From positions 1 to 12,212 of the forward strand of contig NW_021826773.1 in the NCBI RefSeq assembly GCF_006345805.1: a DNA stretch of 12,212 nt, read 5' to 3'. Both the position numbers and the translations under genes were made by a program. This DNA is from Octopus sinensis. Its lineage: Eukaryota. The first letter of the stretch is position 1, and every line of letters starts with the position of its first letter. The notes below the pieces were generated by a model that worked only from the letters and a program-made list of their open reading frames with translations, did no database searches and was not told where the DNA came from. Shown here piece after piece: positions 1-12,212 of the stretch.

Positions 1-77
1 GTCGATTTGCTCGACTAAAGGCGGTGCTCCAGCATGGCCGCAGTCAAATGACTGAAACAAGTAAAAGAGTAAGAGAG
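1..77 (+). mobile_element. 3' end of SINE family A (cut by window edge)
   Basis: Near-identical to the 3' ends of the copies at 7081-7152 and 9274-9353 (gtcgatttgctcgactaaaggcggtgctccagcatggccgcagtcaaatgactgaaacaagtaaaagag). Confidence 0.9.
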
Positions 78-120
78 TCCTTTACGTATGGCAAAACTAT
101 GAAAACGAAAGGGTACAGTG

Positions 121-480
121 GAATTGTACTAGCACCAATGAAGCAATTTTTCAAAGCTCTTAATATGGAAGGTAACAGTTTCCAATTCATATGTGCAACA
201 TTTCCTGGCCTAATTTATATATTTCTTTACTGCCCACAATGGGCTAAACTTAGAGGGAACAAACAAGGACAGACAAAGGGGTTAAGTCGATTACATTGAC
301 CTGAGTGCGTAACTGGGACTTAATTTTATCGACCCCTAAAGGATGAAAGGCAAAGTCGATTTCGGCGGAATTTGAACTTAGAACGTAACGGCAGACGAAA
401 TACGGTTACGCATCTCGCCCGGCGGGCTAACGTTTCTGCCAAGCTCGCCGCCATCCTGGCCTAATTTATAATAAAATAAC
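121..480 (+). pseudogene. Degenerate DNA-transposase fragment (Chapaev3/CMC-like), split by a SINE
   Basis: Removing the SINE and one TSD copy joins 121-219 to 471-480 in frame, giving IVLAPMKQFFKALNMEGNSFQFICATFPGLIYNKI. This resembles a recalled transposase motif, HIKLGLMKQFVKALxxxGxxFxYIxxxFPGLSxEKIK. The superfamily name is from memory. Confidence 0.45.
220..453 (-). mobile_element. Full-length SINE family B (tail type 1) with 17-bp TSD
   Basis: Reverse complement matches the 7454-7684 copy from head (ggcggcgagc) to tail (gtgggcagtaaagaaat). Flanked by a perfect direct repeat tcctggcctaatttata at 203-219 and 454-470. Confidence 0.92.
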
Positions 481-668
481 TCCACTCATGCATAGTTTCT
501 TAATGTTTAATAGCTAGATTTAAACATACTTTCAAAAATTCTTATTTTGTTTTCCACACATTCACCTGTGTAGGTTGAACTTTATCTACTCATCTGTATA
601 TTCGCGCGTACACGCACAAACATGTATATACATTAATCCCTTGCCACATCGCGGTTCACCTATCGTGG

Positions 669-674
669 TTTATT
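669..674 (-). terminator. Candidate polyadenylation signal (AATAAA) for the EB1-like gene
   Basis: tttatt on the + strand about 200 nt past the stop codon; an ATTAAA also occurs at 794-799. Weak evidence in AT-rich DNA. Confidence 0.3.
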
Positions 675-869
675 ATTCAAGCTTACATCGATTCCTCCGT
701 GAGGTTGTTTTGCATTTATAATAAAATAAATATTTACAGATTATAAAAAGAATTTTAAAAAAAATATTGACATAACAGGACTGTTATGACGTTTTTAATA
801 ACATGTGGCTAAAATAAATTGGATGCAGTCCGACTTCTTTTTTAACGAGGTTCGTAGATTGTAACATTT

Positions 870-1265
870 TTAGCTATCATCCACATTGCGATTTGCTTCG
901 AAAAAGTGCTGGAACCACAAAGCAAAAAAGAAATTGAACTTAAAAGATCCTCGTACAAGATCATCTATTGGTATGGTCTTATCGACCTTCAAATTATGCA
1001 GAGCCATATTCAATTTCATAAGATTTATTCTTTTATAATATTCGTACGAAATATCTTTTTTCACTTCCCTCATGTTGATAGCTCCTGGAAACAATATGTT
1101 AATTCCGATACAGAAGTGCAGCCCCGTCGAAAGTTCCGTGATGTCAGTAATGCCCAGTTTCAGATTCTCTCTGTACCATGATACTAATCGCCTTCTACTC
1201 ATATGTCTTAATCTGAAATGCGTCACCGCCATCACGTACGTCTTAAAGAAACGAAAAAGAGACAT
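870..1265 (-). CDS. MAPRE-like: EB1/MAPRE (RP/EB family)-like protein, CH domain only; likely start at 1232 (MAV..., 120 aa) or 1265 (131 aa)
   Basis: SRRRLVSW...FFEAN aligns without gaps to recalled human EB1 residues 16-118, about 40/103 identical by hand. Family motifs LFPGxI, VK, VDKxIPxDxLVxGxF and NFxFxxWFxxFFxAN are kept. The second ATG gives MAV, like the EB1 N-terminus, in a gtgATGG context. TAA stop at 872-870. Confidence 0.9.
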   Translation of the reverse strand: MSLFRFFKTYVMAVTHFRLRHMSRRRLVSWYRENLKLGITDITELSTGLHFCIGINILFPGAINMREVKKDISYEYYKRINLMKLNMALHNLKVDKTIPIDDLVRGSFKFNFFFALWFQHFFEANRNVDDS

Positions 1266-1410
1266 GTCAACAAGGAAACGAGAATTACAGATTTCACTGG
1301 TATTTTGACGTTAAAGTATGTAAACTATTGAAAAAGAACGAGTTATTGTAGGATAGTTTCACTTAATTCTAGATTATTTTGATAATGCCGTTTTCTGTTT
1401 TAAGAACTAA

Positions 1411-1614
1411 TAATCCTTTCTACAATACGCACAAGGCCTGAAATTTGAAGAAGGAGATAGTCGATGTAATCGACCCCAGTACTTTATCGCTGGTACTTCA
1501 TTTAGCGACTTCGAAAGGATGAAAGGCAAAAGTCGACCACTCAGAACGTAGCGACAGGAGAAATACCGCTAAACATTTCATCCAGCGTGCTAACGGTTCT
1601 GCCAGCTCACCACC
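1411..1614 (-). mobile_element. SINE family B (tail type 2), internal deletion
   Basis: Head and core match family B (gccagctcaccacc; ggatgaaaggcaaaagtcgac; tcgatgtaatcgaccccagt). The tail differs (aaatttcaggccttgtgc...gaaaggatta on the - strand), and about 16 nt around the B box are missing. Confidence 0.85.
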
Positions 1615-1734
1615 TTGAAAAGCAAATCATCTAACAAAAAAGCGTGATTTGCTAATGACTTTGCTGCCTTGTAAACTGTACTTTCCTGAAATAACGTCAC
1701 TTTAAACATTAAGCAATAGTCATTTTCCACAGAC

Positions 1735-1782
1735 GTGTGCGCGCGCGCGTGCGTGCGTGCGTGCGTGCGTGCGTGTGTGTGT
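1735..1782. repeat. (GC)n/(GCGT)n/(GT)n alternating purine-pyrimidine microsatellite
   Basis: Direct reading. Confidence 0.95.
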
Positions 1783-1833
1783 TTGCGTGACAAGGCAAAT
1801 GATTGACACAATCGTATAGAGCATTGCAACATT

Positions 1834-1900
1834 TAACACACTCACCGGTAAAATTTCCACTTATTACGTCTTTTTATTTTTCTAAAATATTAAAATATTG
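1834..1900. mobile_element. Degenerate fragment of the foldback/MITE-like family seen at 11630-11868
   Basis: aacacactcaccggtaaaatttccacttatt...ttttctaaaat matches the reverse complement of 11778-11838 (aacacactatccggtaaaattccagttatt...ttttctaaaat). Confidence 0.6.
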
Positions 1901-2212
1901 CAAAATTTCTTTTGGCATTTTAAATTACTGTAGAACTTTCCGTTGACTTACGTCGTTTCGGGTTCAATACAACAAATAGGAGCAAAATTAATAGAAACTG
2001 GGAAAACAGGGGAGGGGAATAAACAGTGATACATGGAAGGAGATGAAGCAACGGGCTGCACATCCCAGAATAAATGAGCCCCGTGAATTGGAGTGTTTCT
2101 GCTCCATTCTCCATAAAGCTAAACAATAGTCTAGAATTGACAGAATTGTTCGTGTATTGAACCAAAATGCGTTGTTATAGTTCTTCCCATTTTTCATCGA
2201 TTCATTTGGCAG

Positions 2213-2398
2213 GGGAGCGTGCCAATATTGTCAGTATCTATCTGACAAGGTGGATTTCTAGTGAAACAAATTGCCTCACGGAAGAAATAAGAAACCGCCT
2301 TTGTATTCTCTCACGGAAACACCATGCCAAGTACCGTGTGTTCGACATGGGGTGTTCTGCTGGCTTGGAGACGCTTAGAGGAAGTGATTATGGCGATG
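2213..2398 (+). CDS. Putative internal coding exon of a plus-strand host gene (NWD/DUF4062-like N-terminus?)
   Basis: Acceptor ttttcatcgattcatttggcAG, donor G|GTATGC; 186 nt, phase 1/1, open throughout: ERANIVSIYLTRWISSETNCLTEEIRNRLCILSRKHHAKYRVFDMGCSAGLETLRGSDYGD. Confidence 0.55.
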
Positions 2399-2505
2399 GT
2401 ATGCTACACGTATTACTACTGAATTTTAACCAGTCTCTTCAGTAGACAAATAATGCCTTACTATAAAAACTAATTCAGTCCTAGCTAGTGAAGATTGATT
2501 TGTAG

Positions 2506-2534
2506 AAACCCCACTGAATTTGGCCAGTGACATG
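2506..2534 (+). CDS. Putative 29-nt micro-exon of the same gene
   Basis: tgatttgtAG|...ATG|GTATGT after a 107-nt intron; phase 1 to 0 continues the frame as (E)TPLNLASDM. Confidence 0.45.
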
Positions 2535-3671
2535 GTATGTGAACAACCAATTTACCAAAAAAGAAAAAAAAAAAAAGGAAACTAACAAAAGAACTGAAGC
2601 TCCTTGGGAGACAACGGTAAGCATATCCCGAAGAGATGGACGCCATCAAGATAATATTTCTAGCTGGCATTCTGGCATTTAACAGTAATAAAGAGGTAAT
2701 AGGCTCTGAACACAAAGGGAATTAGGCGGAAGTATTTCATGTATCTGAATTTTTCATGAGTACCTGTACATTTTACTTTTGATATTAGCTACTTTGGAAT
2801 TTGTATATGCATGCCGAGAGAAGAGAAAAGCTGCTCCTGTTGCAAATTCAATATTTTAAATATCCGGTGTTTTTTTTTTTTTTTTTTACACTAATTTAGC
2901 AATCCGTATTTGCTCATGTCTTTTACCTGAAAGTGTAAACTACATAGATGTAATCTAAGAAATGAGAGAGAGAGACATGTCTACAAATTAAAATTTCAGT
3001 TATTTCAAGGTTAAAATATTTAGACGTTAACTATTGAAAAAAAAATGTTTAGTGTTTGAAAGCTTCACGTAATGTAAGATTTGTTTAATTATGCTAGTTG
3101 TGTGTGTTAGAATATACGATCATTTTTCTGTTTAAAAAAAGATAAAACGTGATTTGCCTAATGACGAAGCAACGCAAAGCAAGGCCTTGTTTTTACTATG
3201 TACACTATCCTCTCCTGAAATACCCTAAACTTTCAGTACTTCCGAGCTCAGTAAGGAATAGAAAAAAACGTAGCGGGGCGGGTTCAAATCTACATGGGGG
3301 ACTATATAATAACATTATACAACCAAGAAAATATTTCGAATGCAGTATCACCGTGAAAATAGCGTAAAATTGCTTACTTTCCTTGCAAGACGGAAAAAAG
3401 TGGTCAACAAACAGCCACGGATCTCAAATTCTCATCTCTCAGAGACCGGTTGAGCACTTTATCGTTAAGCCAAACTATAATTCCGTCTCTCAGAGATGGG
3501 GGGTTCGAGTCAAGTGACTGTTGACAATTGGGTAATAATGCCCAGTTTTTTTTTATGGTTTTCATGGCAATACTGCGTTCGAAATATTACTTTGAATGAT
3601 AAAAAACACATTCGACATGCCTGTTAAAAAATAAAAAACGAACAAAAATCATACAATTTTATATGTTTCCA

Positions 3672-3683
3672 GTGTGTGTGTGT

Positions 3684-3715
<32 letters not shown>

Positions 3716-3735
3716 ATATATATATATATATATAA
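3672..3735. repeat. Compound (GT)n-(TA)n microsatellite
   Basis: Direct reading. Confidence 0.95.
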
Positions 3736-3816
3736 TAATAAATATTAGGGAATAAATCCAAATTACAGGGAAAAAATCAGATTTAGGATTAAATCCAATT
3801 TTATAGTAAAATATTA

Positions 3817-3974
3817 TAAAATATTATTAGAGACAAAACCACTATTTGTCAAAACAAACAAGGAAAGACTTAATCAATACATAAAATTTTAATCTATTTA
3901 TTAAAATTTTATGTATTGATTAAGTCTTCCTTGTTTGTTTTGCAAAATAGTGGTTTTGTCTCTAATATATTTTA
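3817..3974. repeat. Near-perfect palindrome, ~75-bp arms, 6-nt loop
   Basis: Arm 3817-3893 is the reverse complement of 3900-3974 apart from two 1-nt indels and one 2-nt change; loop ctattt. Confidence 0.95.
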
Positions 3975-3980
3975 TATATA

Positions 3981-4041
<61 letters not shown>
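3973..4041. repeat. (TA)n microsatellite
   Basis: Direct reading. Confidence 0.95.
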
Positions 4042-4044
<3 letters not shown>

Positions 4045-4210
4045 CGATTTAAAAAAAGCAAAAGATTAAGACCGGATGTGAACAACAAACAGATGTATTA
4101 GTTTATCGTTCGGGAAGTGAGAAAGACTTTTATGTTTTGAGCCTACGCTCTTCGACGGAAAGGAATAGAGAAATAACACATGGAGAGAAAATAGCAATAT
4201 ATATAATTCA
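4042..4210 (-). mobile_element. Interspersed repeat remnant, possibly Penelope-like pseudo-LTR
   Basis: Recalled as an octopus dispersed repeat. The minus strand carries a decayed GAAGAGC-GTAG-GCTC-(G/A)AAAC motif like Penelope hammerhead relics. Classification is inference. Confidence 0.35.
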
Positions 4211-4276
4211 AAGATTTAACAAAATCACTGCAAACGGAAAATTTAAGAAAAGTATAACAAACTGTTCTAGGAAAAA

Positions 4277-4522
4277 TTAGGTGAACCATTCTCCTCGTTT
4301 CTCTGGTGGAAGTAGTTTTACCTCCCCACCTACTTTAGTTATGTAAGCTTGAAAACCTGGCAATTTTTCTAGGTTTATCTCCTTTTCCTCTGTCGTCTTT
4401 TTTGCAGCTCCAGCGTACGTCTTTTTAACTTCCATATTATTCACAGCGCCGATCAGCTCGTCCTCAGAGGTCGATGCTTCTGACAAGGTCTCGAACAACC
4501 ATTCCTCCTCCGACTCTTCCAT
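4277..4522 (-). pseudogene. N-terminal fragment of L1/Tx1-like LINE ORF1
   Basis: MEESEEEWLFETLSEASTSEDE...KKTYAGAAKK...KEINLEKLPGF has an acidic N-terminus and a [ST]YA-xx-AK motif typical of non-LTR ORF1 proteins; paralogous motifs occur at 5917-5967. The longer annotated ORF (to 4804) reads through UTR. Confidence 0.6.
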
Positions 4523-4556
4523 TAGGGAGGGGGTCGTCCATATCCTTTTGTCTGTC

Positions 4557-4744
4557 TCACACAGACAGACAACGGCCGCCAGAACAGAAACAGTATAACA
4601 CGAAACCGTATCAACAAACGTACAACAAAATTCAACAACAACAATTTTCCAACTTACTTTTTTGTTCTTTTTTGCAGTTTCAGGAGCGTTCACTAACAAC
4701 CGACCAATGGTTCGTATTTGGTGATTCTGCGAAGAGATATTTGG
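4557..4744 (-). repeat. Direct repeat copy 1 (LINE 5'-UTR block)
   Basis: Matches 5050-5240 except for a 2-nt indel, a 1-nt indel and one substitution. Confidence 0.95.
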
Positions 4745-5049
4745 TGATTCTTTATTACCCACTAGGGGCGACACAGAGGGGACACCACAAGACATTGGGG
4801 GCATAGAACATTACAATTAATAGTATGGAGAATAAATTTTTAGAATGATAATGATAATATGAAAGCGATGCTGACGGCCCCATCCGCCAGCACCACTTAC
4901 CTGTCCTTCACAACCCTTCGTCACCTCTTATCTCCAATCAAAAGCCCCTCTCAAATATCCTTTCATACTCTTTTATCTCCTCATTCGAAAACTCCACCTC
5001 AATCGCTTTTACACTCTCATTTACACACATCTTCATTGTGTCCATTACT
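4745..5049 (-). mobile_element. 3' end of a non-LTR element: coding remnant, 3' UTR and AATAAA
   Basis: Minus frame 5045-4908 reads MDTMKMCVNESVKAIEVEFSNEEIKEYERIFERGF*LEIRGDEGL*. AATAAA at 4756-4751. The terminal ~45 nt are homologous to the SINE B type-1 tail. Confidence 0.6.
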
Positions 5050-5240
5050 TCACACAGACAGACAACGGCCGCCAGAACAGAAACAGTATAACACGAAACC
5101 GTATCAACAAACGTACAACAAAATTCAACAACAACAATTTTCCAACTTACTTTTTTGTTCTTTTTTGCACAGTTTCAGGAGCGTTCACTAACAACCGACC
5201 AATGGTTCGTATTTGGTGATTCTAGCGAAGAGAGATTTGG
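5050..5240 (-). repeat. Direct repeat copy 2 (LINE 5'-UTR block)
   Basis: See 4557-4744. Confidence 0.95.
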
Positions 5241-5710
5241 ACGGCTGAAGAGAAAAAACAATATTAAAATAAAATACCGACTGAGACGGTTTTTTATATG
5301 GTTACGTGCTAGTGGGAGGAGAGAGAAAGAGGAGGGCACAGAAGCAATAGAGAAGAATGTTAGGGAGGAAAGGGGAGAGGGAGAGAGGTAAAAGAGAGGT
5401 AAAGGAAGAGAAAGACATAAAGACTTCTTACGAAAAATATCTCAAGAATATTCCATTTTTATTTTCCTTTGTAAAAAAGACGTAACGGGATCAAATCGCA
5501 CGAGGCGTGCCGTTGCTTTATAGAAGGAACGTTTGTCGTTATTTTTTATAGAAGTTGTCAATTGAATTGTCTATGTTATAACCGGGATTTTATTACCAGC
5601 TTTTGTTAATTTTTTTTTTGGTGGGGGAAGTAAGTTCTTTTTGAATTGTTATTCGAAGTATATTATTTGATTATCATTTATTGAAGTCGCTAAGGAGGAG
5701 TAGGCCAATA

Positions 5711-5990
5711 ATGGCCAGCCCGAAGGCGGACAGAACTGAGGACCGAACCCAGGTCCTAAACAAAAGTCCAGTTAGCAGGATGTCCAGTCCAGAAAGAATG
5801 GGTATACCCGTTTTTTCTCTGATACCGACGAAGAGGAAAAAAGCGTAACCAAAAAAGAAAAATTGCAGGTACGCAGAAATATAAACGTGCCAAGCTTGGC
5901 AAAGAAGATGTTAAACTTCGCCGAAGCGGCAGGTCCCAAAGAAAGAAAAATTAATTTATCAAAGCTGGAAGAAATAAAGAAGACTATATC
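5711..5990 (+). pseudogene. Frameshifted N-terminal ORF1 fragment of a related LINE
   Basis: ATG at 5711, a 1-nt frameshift near the T6 run (5811-5816), then FSDTDEEE...LNFAEAAGPKERKINLSKL, paralleling TYAGAAKK...EKEINLEKL of the minus-strand fragment. Confidence 0.5.
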
Positions 5991-6101
5991 AAGAAACGGT
6001 TATGAAATAAAAATACGGCAGTCACAGGAATCTCGTGAAGGGATAGAGAAAAGAACAATAATTCATAAAAAGTATAGAAATAAAGAGAAAAAGATAGAAA
6101 A

Positions 6102-6381
6102 AAACCTAAAAGCTCCACGAGGCTCCGGCAGGGATGGTGGTGATCCCTGCTGTATTCTCTCACCACAACTTTCTCTCACTCTTACTTCCTGTTTCTGTTG
6201 TACCTGTATTTCAAGGGGTCGGCCTTGTCACTCTCTGTGTCACGCTGAATATCCCCGAGAACTACGTTAAGGGTGCACGTGTCTGTGGAGTGCTCAGCCA
6301 CTTACACGTTAATTTCACGAGCAGGCTGTTCCGTTGATTCGAATCAACCGGAACCCTGATCGTCGTAACCGACGGAGTGCT
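6102..6381 (+). mobile_element. 5'-truncated SINE family C
   Basis: GC-richer block (agctccacgaggctccggcagggatgg...cgtaaccgacggagtgc) recalled as the body of a common octopus SINE; tRNA head absent; internal perfect hairpin gcagggat/atccctgc. Single copy in the window. Confidence 0.6.
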
Positions 6382-6488
6382 TCCATTCAGTGAGATAGTG
6401 GTTTGTTTGAGGATGTTAACCCTTATTTCTAGCAAGCTGATTCTTCGTGTACCCTCCATTATAATTATAAAGTTTTAATGAAATTTTA

Positions 6489-6498
6489 TACACACACT

Positions 6499-6548
<50 letters not shown>

Positions 6549-6710
6549 TACACATACTCGATGGACTTCGTTCAGTTTCCATCAACCAAAATCCACTCAA
6601 TGGGAAGCTTGAGACTATAGCAGAATACACTTGCCGAAGGTGCCACGCAGTGGGACTGAACTCGGAACAATGTGGTTGGGAAGCCAGCTTCTTACCCCAC
6701 ACCCACGCTT
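6489..6710 (-). mobile_element. SINE family A, 5' half plus internal (CA)n
   Basis: Reverse complement aligns to 6711-6865 with roughly 20% divergence by eye (ggtaagaagc...gttcagtcccactgcgtggcaccttcggcaagtg). Confidence 0.88.
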
Positions 6711-6880
6711 GGCTGTGTGGTAAGTAGCTTGCTTACCAACCACATGGTACCGGGTTCAGTTCCACTGCGTGGTACCTTCGGCAAGTGTCTTCTACTATAG
6801 CCTCGGGCCGACCAAAGCCTTGTGAGTGGATTTGGTAGACAGAAACTGAAAGAAGCCCGTCATACATATATGTATATATG

Positions 6881-6914
<34 letters not shown>

Positions 6915-7152
6915 CATATATATATATACATGTACTTGTGTGTATATGTTTGTGTGTGTGTGTTTGTCCCCCCCCATCGCTTGACAATCGATGCTAGGGT
7001 GTTTACGTCCCCGTAACTTAGCGTTTCGGCAAAAGAGACCGACAGGATAAGTACTAGGCTTACAAAGAATAAGTCCTGGGATCGATTTGCTCGACTAAAG
7101 GCGGTGATCCAGCAATGACCACAGTCAAATGACTGAAGCAAGTAAAAGAGTA
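6711..7152 (+). mobile_element. Full-length SINE family A (tRNA-derived head, internal TA/GT microsatellite, GAGTAAAA-type tail)
   Basis: tRNA-like head with B box GGTTCAGTTCC; collinear with 8933-9353. Confidence 0.93.
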
Positions 7153-7300
7153 ATTCTTTCAAATTTAGGCACGTGATCAGCAATTTCATAGGCAAGGTGT
7201 ATCGAGTAACCGAAATGACAAAAGGCTAAGTTCACTCATTGGCATTTGAACTCAGAATGGAAAGAATAAGAATATATACCGCAAAGCATTTTTTCCACCA
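7153..7300 (-). mobile_element. Old, deleted SINE family B (tail type 3)
   Basis: tttgaactcagaat...ataccgcaaagcattt matches the reverse complement of the B head; the tail attctttcaaatttaggcac...cagcaattt resembles the type-2 tail. Confidence 0.55.
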
Positions 7301-7453
7301 TATTTTTTTAATGTTTTTGTAACGCTCTAAATTCTCCCATCTCACAGCGTATGTTTATTTCGCAGTCATTTCTGTATGCAAATTCCAACAGACACAAGCA
7401 AATATCTTCACATATCAGTCACAACACTATACAAGAAACTTAGTGGCCAGGAG

Positions 7454-7868
7454 GGCGGCGAGCTGGCAGAGTAGCTAGCACGTCGGGCGAAATGCTTAGC
7501 GGTATTTCGTCTGCTGTTACGTTCTGAGTTCAAATTCCGCCGAGGTCGACTTTGCCTTTCATCCTTTCGGGGTCGATTAAATAAGTACCAGTCACGCATT
7601 GGGATCGATATAATCGACTTAATCCGTTTGTTTGTCCTTGTTTGTCCTTTCTGTGTTTAGCCCCTTGTGGGTAGTAAAGAAATAGGTATTTCGTCTGTAG
7701 CTACGTTCTGAGTTCAAATTCCGCCGAGGTCGACTTTGCCTTTCATCCTTTCTGGGTCGATTAAATAAGTACCAGTTACGCACTGGGGTCGGTGTAATCG
7801 ACTTAATCCGTTTGTCTGTCCTTGTTTGTCCTCTCTGTGTTTAGCCCCTTGTGGGTAGTAAAGAAATA
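7454..7868 (+). mobile_element. SINE family B (tail type 1) with tandem 184-bp body duplication
   Basis: One head (7454-7500) followed by units 7501-7684 and 7685-7868, each starting ggtatttcgtctg with B box GAGTTCAAATTCC. Probable TSD act(t/a)agtggcca at 7438-7449 and 7882-7893. Confidence 0.93.
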
Positions 7869-8067
7869 TATAAAAGAAGCCACTAAGTGGCCATTGCTAG
7901 TGTGGCGATGGTGGTGGTAGAAGAATAGCTGGAAATATCTTCGTCTTTGTTTTTTGTTTTACATTATGCTTGCTAGTTGTTATTTTCTTAGTTTCTGTTT
8001 ACATGTATTTATAGGATGCAATGAAATATAATACTTGATATTCCCAAAAACTCTTATACTTTATTGA

Positions 8068-8079
8068 ATGTGTGTGCGT

Positions 8080-8122
<43 letters not shown>

Positions 8123-8182
8123 AAGAAAGATTTTGTGTGTATGTAATATATATGTATATCTATCTGTCTATACATACATACA

Positions 8183-8216
<34 letters not shown>

Positions 8217-8242
8217 CATACATAATACATACATATATACAT
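8068..8242. repeat. Compound (GT)n, (AG)n, (TACA)n microsatellites
   Basis: Direct reading. Confidence 0.95.
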
Positions 8243-8493
8243 AACATTCAAAGCAGGAGGTGCATCCCCAATGGAAACTGCAATCTGGAGAAGCACGACC
8301 CTTCAACCAAGACAAAGAACTTCATTCCCAGTTGTGTGCAAGGTTTACTTCTTTCCCTTCCGAAAATGTCAATTCTCGACAATATTCTCCAGAGTACCAA
8401 AAGATCAAGTAAAAGGAAGTTAATTAGCCGATTAGGTTTCACGCAAAATTTTTCGTGCGTTTTACCTATCGTAAAACCATTATGCATACAGGA

Positions 8494-8590
8494 AGTATTA
8501 CTGTTATTGCAGTTGCTGATATTATCATTGTAGTTATTGCTGTTGTTATAAGTGGTGGTAGTGGTGGTGGTGGTGGTTGTAGTGGTGTAG
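8494..8590. repeat. Degenerate trinucleotide (RTT/GGT)n low-complexity tract
   Basis: Direct reading. Confidence 0.85.
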
Positions 8591-8683
8591 CAGAGAAAAT
8601 GGCGGTAACATTGCTGTATTTGATTTTCCTTTGTTATTTTTCTTTTTTATATTGTTGCTTTATCCTCTACATGCTTTAATCCC

Positions 8684-8880
8684 TTGACTGCGATCATGCT
8701 CGGGTGCCTTCTTGAAGGGTTTTAGATGAAAAAATCGACCCCGGGAATTACTCTATATATTTTCTTTTTGAAGCGTGGTACTTATTCTATCGGTTCCTTT
8801 TTACCGAACAGCTAAGTTACGGAGGGCCAAAATATACCACCGGTAGTCAAGCGATAGTAGGGAACACACACACACACATA
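8684..8880 (-). mobile_element. SINE family A, diverged 3' half
   Basis: Reverse complement aligns to about 9150-9325 (ttgactgcg...tggtacttattctatcggt...gctaagttacgg...gtcaagcg) and ends in (CA)n. Confidence 0.85.
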
Positions 8881-8932
8881 TTGTTATATTTCGGGATGAT
8901 CATTTATTTTTATTTATTTATATTTTTTTGAC

Positions 8933-9087
8933 GAGTGGCTGTGTGGTAAGTAGCTTGCTAACCAACCACATGGTTCCGGGTTCAGTCCCACTGCGTGGCA
9001 TCTTGGGCAAGTGTCTTCTGCTATAGCCCCGGGCCGACCAATGCCTTCTGAGTGGATTTGGTAGACGGAAACTGAAAGAAGCCTGTC

Positions 9088-9141
<54 letters not shown>

Positions 9142-9353
9142 TTGTGTGTCTGTGTTTGTCCCCCTAGCATTGCTTGACAACCGATGCTGGTGTGTTTACG
9201 TCTCCGTCTCTTAGCGGTTCGGCAAAAGAGACCGATAGAATAAGTACTGGGCTTACAAAGAATAAGTCCCGGGGTCGATTTGCTCGACTAAAGGCGGTGC
9301 TCCAGCATGGCCGCAGTCAAAATGACTGAAACAAGTAAAAGAGTAAAAGAGTA
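8933..9353 (+). mobile_element. Full-length SINE family A
   Basis: Head gagtggctgtgtggtaagtagc, B box GGTTCAGTCCC, internal (TA)n(GT)n, tail (GAGTAAAA)2. Confidence 0.93.
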
Positions 9354-9650
9354 AATAAACACGCGCACAATATATAAATTTTCTCTCGTTTATTACTGTT
9401 CTTATTTTATTATTTTAACTTATGTTTATTATCCGGAAATCTTTCGTCACACATTTGTGACCACTTCAGTGAAACTTTTCGTTTTCGTGGAGCAAGCGTA
9501 GCAAGAGCACACACGAAAGCGGAAAGTGTCACTGAAGAGGTCACAAATGTGTGACGAAAGATATCCGGACAATGGACATGAGTTAAAATAATAAAATAAG
9601 AACAGCAATAAACAAGTGAATAAAACTAAATATAGTGTGTGTGTTTATTT
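9353..9650. repeat. Long inverted repeat, ~138-bp arms, 22-nt spacer
   Basis: 9353-9489 is the diverged reverse complement of 9512-9650 (for example ctttcgtcacacatttgtgacc / ggtcacaaatgtgtgacgaaag). Confidence 0.92.
9526..9571 (+). ncRNA. Hammerhead-ribozyme-like core (probably degenerate)
   Basis: CTGAAGA (9532-9538), extra G, stem II GTCACA/aatg/TGTGAC, GAAA (9556-9559). Helices I and III are imperfect. Confidence 0.4.
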
Positions 9651-9699
9651 GGCGAAAAAATAATAAATAAATGACCATCCCGAAATACAACAATACCTG

Positions 9700-10080
9700 T
9701 TTCAAACACACGATTTCACACCAGGACTCTTGCAAATCGAATTGATAAACGTAAGGCTTCACTTCCACACACGTCAGGTTAATTTAATTCGTCCTTAGTC
9801 GAAAGACACCTGTTGTTAATGTCCTGTTTGTAATTGTAATTGTGTACCACTTCTCCGTTTCTTTTCGTTCTTGTTTTCGTATGCATTCGCTTGCTTCCTT
9901 CCAAGGAATCTAATGCTCTTAGCTTAGATTTTCTTGGGACCGGTCTGATTGGAGCAGTCTCGAGTGTAACCGGACGAAACTGCTAAAATGATCTGGAACT
10001 TGACTGAGGATAGAAAACTTCGAATGACCCGTCCTTCTTTTTACTGTTCGGATGATTTGTTGTTGCCTGTTACGTTCTTG
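9700..10080. mobile_element. Unclassified dispersed repeat with a structured core
   Basis: Recalled as octopus repeat-like sequence; several internal complementary segments at 9937-10034. No second copy in the window. Confidence 0.35.
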
Positions 10081-10085
10081 TTCCA

Positions 10086-10130
10086 TATATATATTATATA
10101 TATATATTATATATATATATATATGTGTGG

Positions 10131-10187
<57 letters not shown>

Positions 10188-10252
10188 TGTGTGTGTGTGT
10201 ATATATATTTATATATATATTTATATATTTATATATATATATATGTATGTAT
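10086..10252. repeat. Compound (TA)n-(GT)n-(TA)n microsatellite
   Basis: Direct reading. Confidence 0.95.
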
Positions 10253-10309
10253 AACGCCTCGCATCCATTTCCAAGTAATCTTCATCTTAATAATTTCGAT
10301 GCGACACTT

Positions 10310-10460
10310 ATCCTGTCTCTTTCCGTTTCTCTTTCCCTTCCCTCTTTCGTTTCCTCTCTCTTACTTTCGCAAATTCTTTTTATCTCTTCTTCTCCCCTTT
10401 CGTTTTTTCCTTTCATCCTTTCTCTAATTCTTTTCCTCTCTCATTTGCCGTTCTCCGTCA
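10310..10460 (+). repeat. Polypyrimidine (CT-rich) low-complexity tract
   Basis: Direct reading. Confidence 0.8.
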
Positions 10461-10976
10461 CTCTTCCGCCTTTGCACTCTCGTTGTTCGCACGTAATCAT
10501 CGGCCATCATTATTTTCCTATTTGAACTTCTTTATATCTGATCAACCGCAGAGATAAGACGCATTCTTATCTGTCTCCTGTCAGAGCTTGTTCACCAACT
10601 CAACTCGTTCACCATCTCAACTCGCTCAGGCTTAGCAGAACTTCTTGTTTGTTTCCACTGTCCTGTTTTTATTATCAACTTTGACCCTCCGCAAAATCCC
10701 AAATTTTAGTTAATTTGCTTTGCAGTAGCAACTGTTTCGTTGAAAACGTATCTTGTCATGGATTGCTAGAAATACGAAGTAGAAAAACAGCCGACAGCTG
10801 ATGAAGGATAATTTTTTTATGTTGCTTGTCTTGTTTTCCCTTTGTTTCTTTCGTTTTTATCAAAAAAAGTTTGTATTCCTTGTTTTCGTATTTCATATTT
10901 TTTTGCGTTCTATGGTGTCCTGCGCATATACATATATGTATATGCATGTGCATATACATATATACACTACCGTCAG

Positions 10977-11013
10977 AAATTAATTAGCACCCTTGATTTG
11001 CTCTTCACTCAAG
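10977..11013 (+). CDS. Putative 37-nt coding exon of the plus-strand host gene
   Basis: ccgtcAG|AAA...CAAG|GTATGT; phase 0 to 1, KLISTLDLLFTQ(E); phase-compatible with the exon ending at 2534. Confidence 0.5.
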
Positions 11014-11104
11014 GTATGTGCTGTCACCTAGTGGCCATATCTCGAACTATTGCTTTGTTGCGAGTTCACTGTTGCGCAGAACGATGACGTAACTTTGTTT
11101 GCAG

Positions 11105-11204
11105 AGCAGTTTGAGAGTCTACAGCCTTATGATGTTGACATAGCAGTGCAACAACAACTTGGAGTGCGGATGCAGACAAATCTTCCTTTGTTTAATAGAT
11201 ATAG
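11105..11204 (+). CDS. Putative 100-nt coding exon of the plus-strand host gene
   Basis: Follows a 91-nt intron with acceptor taactttgtttgcAG; donor AG|GTAGCG; open frame (E)QFESLQPYDVDIAVQQQLGVRMQTNLPLFNRY. Confidence 0.55.
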
Positions 11205-11406
11205 GTAGCGCCTCGCAAGGACCGAAATCACACCATACTAAGTTTTCTCATCGCGTAAGACGTTTTGAACAGCTCATAGGTTAATTGATTTAACCTATTT
11301 AATGTAGAAATTTGAGAAGTGCTAATTAATTTCTGACGCAAGTGTATGTATGTAGATATCTGTGTATATATGCATTCTTATCCAAGTAAGTTTTGTCTAT
11401 CTCTCC

Positions 11407-11482
<76 letters not shown>

Positions 11483-11625
11483 CTATCTCTCTCCCTTTCT
11501 CTATCTATTTATCTATCTATTTAACTATCTATCTGTTTATCTAACTATTTATCTATTTATTTTATTTATATATCTTTTATATTTATTTATCTATTTTATT
11601 TATTTATTTATTTATTTATTTTATT
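11407..11625. repeat. (ATCT)n decaying into (ATTT)n microsatellite
   Basis: Direct reading. Confidence 0.95.
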
Positions 11626-11629
11626 TTGT

Positions 11630-11868
11630 GAGAGTTATTCTCTTTTGGTGCCTTATAATTTCTGGCCGGTAAAATTTCTACTCATTTCCTTCTTTATTTT
11701 TCTAGGATTTTCGTTGCGTCTTGCAACCTTTTCAAGTTTTTGAAGAGTCAAAACTATTGAAAAAGTTTGCAAGACGCAACGAAAATTTTAGAAAATTAAA
11801 AATAAGAAATAACTGGAATTTTACCGGATAGTGTGTTAATTATAAGGCACTAAAAGAGAATGACTCTC
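11630..11868. mobile_element. Foldback/MITE-like element (~240 bp)
   Basis: Termini gagagttattctcttttggtgccttataatt and aattataaggcactaaaagagaatgactctc; inner arms ttttcgttgcgtcttgcaa / ttgcaagacgcaacgaaaa. No TSD seen. Confidence 0.75.
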
Positions 11869-12212
11869 CCCAGACACAACAGAATTGCTTCAACACACGA
11901 ACTCACATAAAGAATCTTAGAAACCAAATCCAAAAACGAAATATGTATATATACACATTTTTTAAAGTATATAATTATGAAAATATTAAGGCCGCTGGAG
12001 GGTCAACGACAATCCCCTAGGAGTAGATGCCAAATGTCCACCAACCACTCTAAATGATGGATTTGTATAGCGATAGACAGAACGCTATTAATATTGTTTA
12101 AAAAAACGTTATATGATATAACGTCATAAGTAGCTAACAGAAAGAGTAGGGATATTAATAGTGAATGTTAAATATAAGGAAATTAAAGTTTAAATTATAT
12201 ATAATGATAGAG

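Follow-up and report, generated by a model that had tools for sequence, protein, structure and literature searches.

Can a member of the EB family be cut down to its CH domain and persist as a working gene? The plus-end network of microtubules centres on EB proteins, whose CH domains as a rule vary very little. The question is raised by an intact open reading frame (ORF), here called ORF A, on the minus strand of Octopus sinensis contig NW_021826773.1, at positions 870-1265 of the 12.2-kb window analysed (the whole stretch of 12,212 nucleotides, positions 1 to 12,212 of the contig). The frame opens with an ATG at 1265 and runs for 131 codons to a TAA at 872-870. We found that ORF A encodes an EB-type CH domain and nothing more, and that its closest relatives belong to a family of EB-like genes in coleoid cephalopods.

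An uninterrupted reading frame with an EB1-type CH domain was the core of the original prediction, made by inspection of the letters, and it holds. ORF A passes the threshold of the Pfam CH profile PF00307 over residues 23-113 (29.9 bits, the cut-off being 26; E 6.8e-7). In phmmer comparisons with PDB chains, residues 13-120 of the human EB1 CH domain (1pa7) align without a gap to residues 20-127 of ORF A (E 1e-21); EB3 scores similarly and Bim1 less well, and every significant PDB sequence match is to EB1, EB3 or Bim1. When a human EB1 sequence was used as a tblastn query against the window, 41 of 110 aligned residues were identical (37%, gapless, E 4e-22), close to the ~39% previously counted by hand. 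No other EB piece was significant in this search of the 12.2 kb; a weak match to the start of the EB1 coiled coil at 330-280 (E ~3) lies within a short interspersed element (SINE) and was set aside as chance. The predicted fold points the same way. An AlphaFold2 model built on a six-sequence alignment, for which two of the five models were poor, has a mean predicted local distance difference test score (pLDDT) of 81.5 and a predicted template-modelling score (pTM) of 0.77. It matches the EB1 CH-domain crystal structure, 1ueg, with a template-modelling (TM) score of 0.83 and a root-mean-square deviation of 1.1 Å. Used as a Foldseek query, the model retrieves EB1, EB3, Mal3 and Bim1 at TM 0.78-0.83, and other CH domains at no more than 0.67.

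Canonical EB1 and EB3 (PDB 1PA7, 1UEG and 3CO1) have in common with ORF A the fold, a gapless identity of 37-38%, the invariant Trp and the lysine equivalent to EB1 K89; they differ from it in possessing a linker, a coiled coil, an EBH domain and an EEY tail, all four of which ORF A lacks. The coiled-coil dimerisation region is absent from ORF A, and no similarity to an EB C-terminus was found anywhere in the window. The EBH domain (PF03271) was not found in ORF A, whose sole Pfam match is the CH domain, and the acidic EEY/F tail is missing, the protein ending in ...RNVDDS. The earlier description of a stand-alone CH domain is accordingly correct, as is the ending reported for it after FFEAN; the seven residues then counted beyond this motif are six, since seven includes the stop.

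The family to which ORF A belongs was revealed by an exhaustive HMMER search of 1.84 billion representatives; word-indexed homologue searches, whether with ORF A or with the family alignment as query, gave no match. The search returned P0002, P0004, P0001, P0003, P0005 and P0007, all much closer to ORF A than canonical EBs are, and the top library matches are octopod proteins at 41-53% identity, against 37% for EB1. Octopus bimaculoides contributes P0151 (299 residues, named 'MAPRE2'); O. vulgaris contributes P0152 (301 residues, 'MAPRE1-like'), which like P0151 has P0002 as an orthologue, and P0017, and Argonauta hians P0001, P0007, P0008, P0056 and P0124, while the wider clade takes in the cuttlefish Acanthosepion pharaonis. 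In a neighbour-joining tree of CH domains, ORF A groups with the P0151 and P0004 groups. The HMMER/Pfam and phylogenetic check proposed alongside the original prediction has thus confirmed the CH domain and its EB type and placed ORF A in the coleoid EB-like family. No description of a cephalopod EB expansion was found in literature searches, and the family is apparently both sizeable and undescribed so far.

The sequences closest to ORF A are P0151, P0152 and P0002, with 46-53% identity over the CH domain depending on member and method (50-53% for P0002, a protein of 299 residues). In common with ORF A, these genes begin with MAVTHF and have an intronless coding sequence (CDS); their 5' untranslated region (5'UTR) and flank are homologous to its own, and EB1 Q102 is represented by a lysine. 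The MAVTHF of P0002 stands exactly as at Met12 of ORF A, an in-frame ATG at 1232-1230 that aligns with the start codons of P0151, P0152, P0002 and P0004; the first ATG, at 1265, extends the protein by 11 residues, drawn from what is 5'UTR in the closest relatives. The three proteins differ from ORF A in a less basic N-terminus and in running ~185 codons further, through a linker and a coiled-coil tail with faint EBH-like motifs.

These relatives are all longer than ORF A, their CH domain being followed by a low-complexity linker and a tail at the C-terminus. Where genomic DNA was available, gene span and CDS length coincide in P0151 (299 residues, 900 nt), P0152 (301 residues, 906 nt), P0008 (695 residues, 2088 nt) and P0001 (428 residues, 1287 nt), and these four coding sequences are therefore intronless; the exception is P0056 of Argonauta, which occupies more DNA than its CDS requires. 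Members can lie in tandem, as do P0008 and P0056, ~5.5 kb apart. P0004 is known from a 1.69-kb contig, apparently a transcript, whose ends are identical across three sequencing runs. PF03271 was compared with three full-length members, P0151, P0004 and P0008, and matches none of them. The tail motifs KEANLFFNKLQCIDRLCR of P0056 and IVDILKDTNEKF of P0002 bear a faint, collinear coiled-coil/EBH likeness to EB1 KERDFYFGKLRNIELICQ and IVDILYATDEGF, respectively, and a profile of the family tail matches EB1 185-233 at E 0.004-0.08, among generic coiled coils. These likenesses are weak evidence that the family may stem from a full-length EB. ORF A has a CH domain within the clade, an uninterrupted coding sequence and a 5'UTR and flank in common with the P0151 subgroup; what it does not have is the linker and coiled-coil tail with degenerate EBH-like motifs. 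As its homology to the family ends at 886 and profiles of the tail and the post-CH segment match nothing downstream, ORF A is a truncated relative rather than a full member.

How did it arise? An nhmmer profile that joins the CDS of three orthologous loci to 293 nt of 5'UTR and to 3' sequence aligns with the window from 1401 to 886, that is, from within the 5'UTR to about nucleotide 343 of the CDS, where the CH domain ends (E 3.3e-42). The homology stops five codons short of the TAA, and those five codons are unrelated to the family. On the 5' side, ~700 nt of flank and 5'UTR are common to ORF A and the O. bimaculoides P0151 locus and are collinear between them, extending further than the 293 nt that contig L002 has ahead of the CDS. 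Because it carries ~700 nt of a paralogue's flank, ORF A is a DNA-level duplicate within an already intronless family, and its origin as a truncated duplicate of this kind is well supported.

This was not the origin first proposed. The intronless frame had been taken for a retrocopy of EB1, and in principle ORF A could be an independent, fast-evolving processed copy of a canonical octopus EB1/MAPRE mRNA, truncated to the CH domain. An intronless coding sequence in a repeat-rich region would suit such an origin, and, since canonical EB genes contain introns, a retrogene is a plausible start for the whole family. We nevertheless regard a separate retroposition as very improbable. The nearest relatives of ORF A are members of the divergent family and not canonical EBs; the ~700 nt of upstream flank, collinear with that of a paralogue, would be missing from a processed copy; and no poly(A) tract was seen after ORF A on direct reading, target-site duplications not having been searched for. 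Any retro-origin would belong to the ancestor of the family and not to ORF A. Two further features read as signs of a selected gene find no support. The GTAAGT donor at 1951, from which a 5'UTR intron had been proposed, is specific to the ORF A locus, the corresponding sequence being TTTAAGT in O. bimaculoides and deleted in O. vulgaris. The putative poly(A) signal fares no better, as the hexamers 3' of ORF A (ATTAAA at 799 and 511, AATAAA at 674) occur at about chance frequency, the AT-rich window having AATAAA and ATTAAA by chance at 2.8 per kb per strand.

The manner of truncation can be read from the 3' side. Searches of window positions 1-869 with tblastn, blastn and nhmmer brought up neither linker nor tail nor 3' flank of the family; a profile covering 32 residues that follow FF(D/E)AN in the family had no downstream match in any of the six frames; and the sequence at 446-886 matches none of the fetched loci. 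Read-through past the TAA, which had been thought faintly EB1-like (KCYNLR), was considered as KCYNLRTSLKKK against PYDILQLRAQYCKKK, with a possible TAT-to-TAA change, and was rejected: the likeness is not significant, the DNA alignment being no better than that of shuffled sequences (231/500), and the post-CH family profile has no match at the site. To judge from these comparisons, ORF A was truncated by partial duplication or deletion, and not by a nonsense mutation that recently cut short a longer frame.

The same 3' side bears on the idea that ORF A is only the first coding exon of a larger gene, spliced for example at AAT|GTGGAT (885/884) to sequence beyond the left edge of the window. 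There is some room for it: only 869 nt of the window lie beyond the stop, half of them SINE, the candidate GT coincides with the end of family homology, and P0056, with a span greater than its CDS needs, indicates that introns can occur in the family. Against this, in four relatives a single exon without interruption encodes the CH domain together with linker and tail, no frame of 1-869 holds a tail-like coding sequence, and GTGGAT is a weak donor when set beside the GTRAGT consensus. We consider a missing downstream exon rather improbable.

Whether the CH frame was maintained in the past is a question that its pattern of substitution can address. Over 115 gapless codons, ORF A and P0151 differ with p-distances of 0.35, 0.26 and 0.635 at first, second and third positions; dN, the nonsynonymous distance, is ~0.40, and dS, the synonymous distance, is saturated (undefined with both NG86 and LWL85). 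Between orthologues within the family, omega is 0.13-0.2 by NG86 and maximum-likelihood methods. The coding alignment of ORF A contains no indel, as against 31 gap columns out of ~190 in the flank alignment, and in neutral simulations with substitutions only the frame stayed open in 0.25-3.4% of runs at p = 0.2-0.4. Of 23 columns conserved in at least 85% of the family, ORF A keeps 21, other members keeping 68-100%, and it matches the consensus in 31% of the remaining columns (Fisher p 1e-7). For ORF A, 59% of the codons whose amino acid is unchanged differ, a figure equal to that of the paralogue pair P0151-P0004 and to be compared with 19% between orthologues; the ORF A lineage is therefore as old as the P0151/P0004 split. 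With P0004 as outgroup, 21 replacements, many of them conservative, are specific to the ORF A lineage and eight to the P0151 group (Tajima test p 0.016); ORF A evolves ~2.6 times faster than its sister lineage. Taken together, these comparisons show long-term purifying selection on the CH frame, at a raised rate, for most of its history.

A dead neighbour provides an internal control. Copy B, a partial duplicate in the same window, retains ~265 nt of 5' flank and a decayed coding part with a stop at codon 2, another stop replacing the invariant Trp, a poly-A insertion and a frameshift. Its coding p-distance is 0.34 to P0151 and 0.53 to ORF A; being nearer to P0151, it is not a copy of ORF A. 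The in-frame upstream ATG of ORF A is specific to these two copies. When each is compared with P0151 over the same 77 codons, copy B is flat across codon positions (0.34/0.30/0.39), whereas ORF A is not (0.35/0.30/0.65). Copy B is by definition a pseudogene; ORF A has neither stop nor indel and shows a strong third-position excess. Three assertions of the original prediction are borne out here: that the hydrophobic core is intact (21 of 23 conserved columns, and the superposition on 1ueg), that ORF A evolves fast and yet keeps this core (21 against eight lineage-specific changes), and that it resembles a selected gene more than a dead copy (third-position excess, no indels, saturated dS and the contrast to copy B).

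What might such a protein do? The predicted product, of 120 or 131 residues, has a mass of 14-16 kDa and an isoelectric point (pI) of 9.7-9.9, and would be a strongly basic monomer, a CH domain of the EB type that has no segment for dimerisation or partner binding. It retains the lysine equivalent to EB1 K89. Several basic surface positions of EB1 have been replaced (K60E, K66S, K76M, K83H, K95D and K100S); full-length relatives have likewise lost several of them. ORF A and most of the family carry a lysine at the position of EB1 Q102, which is Mal3 Q89, an equivalence verified on PDB sequences. In Mal3, Q89E impairs tip tracking, whereas Q89A and Q89R enhance lattice binding; Q89A binds more strongly along the whole microtubule and end tracking by Q89R is reported lost (PMC3368265). 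The first 25 residues of ORF A have a net charge of +6, the highest in the family, the others ranging from -1 to +4. It is tempting to speculate that this N-terminus could partly offset the missing basic linker and dimerisation, and that together with the lysine at the Q102 position it would favor binding to the lattice over tip tracking. A single CH domain of an EB carries end recognition (PMC2686402, PMC3368265). By analogy with engineered CH-only EB fragments, microtubule binding by the ORF A product would be weak, with fast exchange. The protein could not recruit SxIP partners and would be unlikely to out-compete dimeric EBs.

On the evidence available, we see the chances that ORF A is a functional, CH-only gene as evenly balanced. 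A fuller version of this reading, which we hold more tentatively, is that ORF A is an anciently truncated, selectively maintained monomeric "EB head", binding the lattice or another surface through its basic N-terminus and the Q102-to-K change, within an undescribed coleoid-wide radiation that also includes double-CH proteins. Several observations weigh against a working gene. Neither the 131-residue nor the 120-residue product is on record in the contig index, and no closer homologue or orthologue of ORF A was found among the 1.84 billion representatives; exact look-ups of four ORFs or ORF forms from the window and a metagenome scan gave no match. Partial duplicates in this family are often dead, as exemplified by copy B and by fragments upstream of P0152 (see below); a SINE sits inside the 5' flank of ORF A; and two near-invariant family positions are changed in it, S to K and F to L. 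The selection signal itself may predate the truncation. At p ~0.33, divergence in the alignable 5' flank is lower than at third codon positions (0.635), and constraint on the 5'UTR, whose divergence among orthologues is 0.3-0.7 of dS, explains this only in part. The bias of local alignment to conserved islands accounts for another part, and a shift in composition contributes to the gap: in the CH-coding part (window 888-1232 against L001 10001-10345), GC content at third positions (GC3) is 0.44 in ORF A and 0.35 in P0151, and CpG occurs 13 and six times, at observed/expected ratios of 1.11 and 0.60. The locus may also have a mosaic history in which gene conversion homogenised the flank. Experiments on isolated CH domains also urge caution. 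CH-only EB3-N-mVenus does not accumulate at microtubule tips (PMC2686402), the CH domain of Drosophila Mst27D does not bind microtubules on its own, and that of Drosophila Eb1 does so only when artificially dimerised (PMC10359004). Isolated CH domains are thus poor microtubule binders in three experimental systems, which, by analogy, would leave the role of a CH-only protein less clear. EB3-NL, a monomeric construct of CH domain plus linker, neither displaces the full-length dimer nor has anti-catastrophe activity in cells (PMC2686402). The competitor role once suggested for ORF A is weakened by the behaviour of EB3-N-mVenus, EB3-NL and the Mst27D and Eb1 domains. EB3-N, EB3-NL and the Mal3 Q89 mutants are laboratory constructs that show how CH-only EBs behave, whereas ORF A would be a natural one; since EB3-N and EB3-NL are weak in assays, a natural CH-only protein would need compensating features.

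Alternatively, ORF A could be a recently disabled relic: a family member, full-length or otherwise functional through most of its past, whose 3' part went in a recent deletion or rearrangement. What is left would be an untranscribed or useless fragment, its frame open only for want of time to decay. Dead copy B adjoins it, partial fragments are common near family genes, its 5' flank has received a SINE, its amino-acid rate is raised, two near-invariant residues are changed, and no annotated product or orthologue was found; moreover, selection signatures measure the past and not the present. This explanation must, however, accommodate 115 codons free of stops and indels despite saturated synonymous sites, and substitutions that avoid conserved columns as strongly as they do in annotated members. 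Were the excess substitutions neutral, they should have left damage to the frame, which by a rough estimate (substitutions alone, p = 0.10) would be open in 15% of cases. As no decayed tail lies downstream, a recent nonsense mutation is excluded and only deletion could have produced the relic. We think a recent loss unlikely, though it deserves to be taken seriously beside a maintained, CH-only ORF A.

If this account holds, coleoids carry an apparently undescribed intronless EB-like expansion, parallel to the testis-specific EB paralogues of Drosophila, in which one copy, cut to the CH domain alone yet apparently constrained, would offer a natural test of the monomeric EB head, and the family-wide lysine at the Q102/Q89 position predicts lattice binding instead of tip tracking. 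If it is unexpressed, ORF A is an ordinary truncated duplicate and only the family stays of interest. The family itself may well be the more useful lead. A good analogue for it as a whole is provided by Mst27D and CG15306 of Drosophila, testis-specific, lineage-specific and divergent EB-like proteins whose similarity to EB1 lies mostly in the CH domain; Mst27D, which originated by retroposition, associates with the lattice of microtubules along its length and not with the tips (PMC10359004). The fly and coleoid families are unrelated expansions in different phyla, and Mst27D retains a coiled coil of its own and a partner-binding C-terminus, whereas ORF A is CH domain only. Short EB-like proteins, with a CH domain and a 40-90-residue tail, occur outside cephalopods too: P0115 of Teleopsis (158 residues), the P0015 cluster (156-210 residues, Logan contigs) and the CG15306 proteins of Drosophila busckii, P0148 and P0166 (153 residues, partial, and 216 residues). 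Those with a named source are all from dipteran flies, and several other short matches are partial gene models. Short EB-like products are therefore not unique to ORF A.

The family also contains two EB-type CH domains in one intronless ORF, in Argonauta P0001 (L008 10001-11287), and P0003, from an ENA contig, is likewise a double-CH protein. The residues ahead of the second CH domain in these proteins resemble the in-frame, 5'UTR-derived extension of ORF A, which suggests that an in-frame tandem duplication of a "5'UTR plus CH" unit may lie behind them. Two uncalled partial EB-like fragments lie upstream of O. vulgaris P0152, on the same strand, at L003 6023-6349 and 7583-7807, corresponding to P0151 residues ~85-203 and 86-161 at 39-43% identity. 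Copy B, these fragments and the double-CH proteins argue that duplication of the unit is recurrent in the family. The features on which the account of ORF A is built are collected in the table.

Table. Features of the ORF A locus and of its dead neighbour, in window coordinates
Feature	Position	Strand	Basis or remark
Intact 131-codon ORF plus TAA (ORF A)	870..1265	-	ORF listing; predicted 15.8 kDa, pI 9.9
Family-homologous coding sequence from Met12, 120 aa	870..1232	-	start-codon alignment with P0151/P0152/P0002/P0004
EB-type CH domain, ORF A residues 20-127	885..1208	-	Pfam, phmmer, structure match
Full homology to P0151-type gene, profile positions 126-636	886..1401	-	nhmmer
Proximal 5' flank/5'UTR-like segment	1233..1401	-	common to copy B and the P0151, P0152 and P0002 loci; p-distance ~0.33, indels
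SINE-like repeat between proximal and distal flank blocks	1458..1627	.	further copies at 199-452, 7454-7868
Distal 5' flank blocks 1636-1659, 1680-1827, 1927-1976	1636..1976	-	collinear with L001 9296-9782; 74-92% identity in blocks
Unique AT-rich sequence 3' of stop	453..869	-	no homology to family linker, tail, 3' flank or fetched loci
Copy B, dead partial duplicate: 5' flank 2948-3213 plus ~68 decayed codons 2735-2947	2735..3213	-	nhmmer E 1.4e-47

A more distal block, at 2057-2644, was considered as flank homology and not counted. Its parts at 2057-2443 and 2583-2644 are 78-85% identical to L003 8577-9140, upstream of P0152 in O. vulgaris, and neither the orthologous O. bimaculoides flank nor any other fetched locus contains the block. 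It could represent a mobile element that was inserted independently, or a conserved upstream element.

The rest of the window is rich in repeats. No Pfam match was obtained for a 175-residue ORF at 4277-4804 or a 135-residue ORF at 5863-6270, and scans of the window for tRNA genes and Rfam families, SINE-like repeats included, were empty. A direct duplication, 4557-4728 and 5050-5223, ~494 nt apart, comprises 120 nt at 100% and 71 nt at 90% identity, and it carries overlapping ORFs with a common peptide, DRQRPPEQKQYNTKPYQQTYNKIQQQQFSNLLFCSFL. Two close inverted repeats, at 9381-9489/9512-9620 (109 nt, 89%, 22-nt loop) and 6611-6705/6710-6804 (95 nt, 86%, 4-nt loop), resemble elements of the miniature inverted-repeat transposable element (MITE) type or hairpin elements. 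Besides the SINE-like copies at 199-452, 1458-1627 and 7454-7868, the last made up of 184-nt tandem units (7501-7684 and 7685-7868), further SINE-like repeats lie at 1-66, 7081-7128 and 9274-9321; the window's SINE-like repeats occur in the O. bimaculoides and O. vulgaris loci as well, at 84-98% identity. Finally, 6705-7114 and 8931-9307, ~2.2 kb apart, are repeats of each other at 88-90% (197 nt and 147 nt), each flanking TA/TG microsatellites, and appear to form a local segmental repeat composed of SINE and microsatellite.

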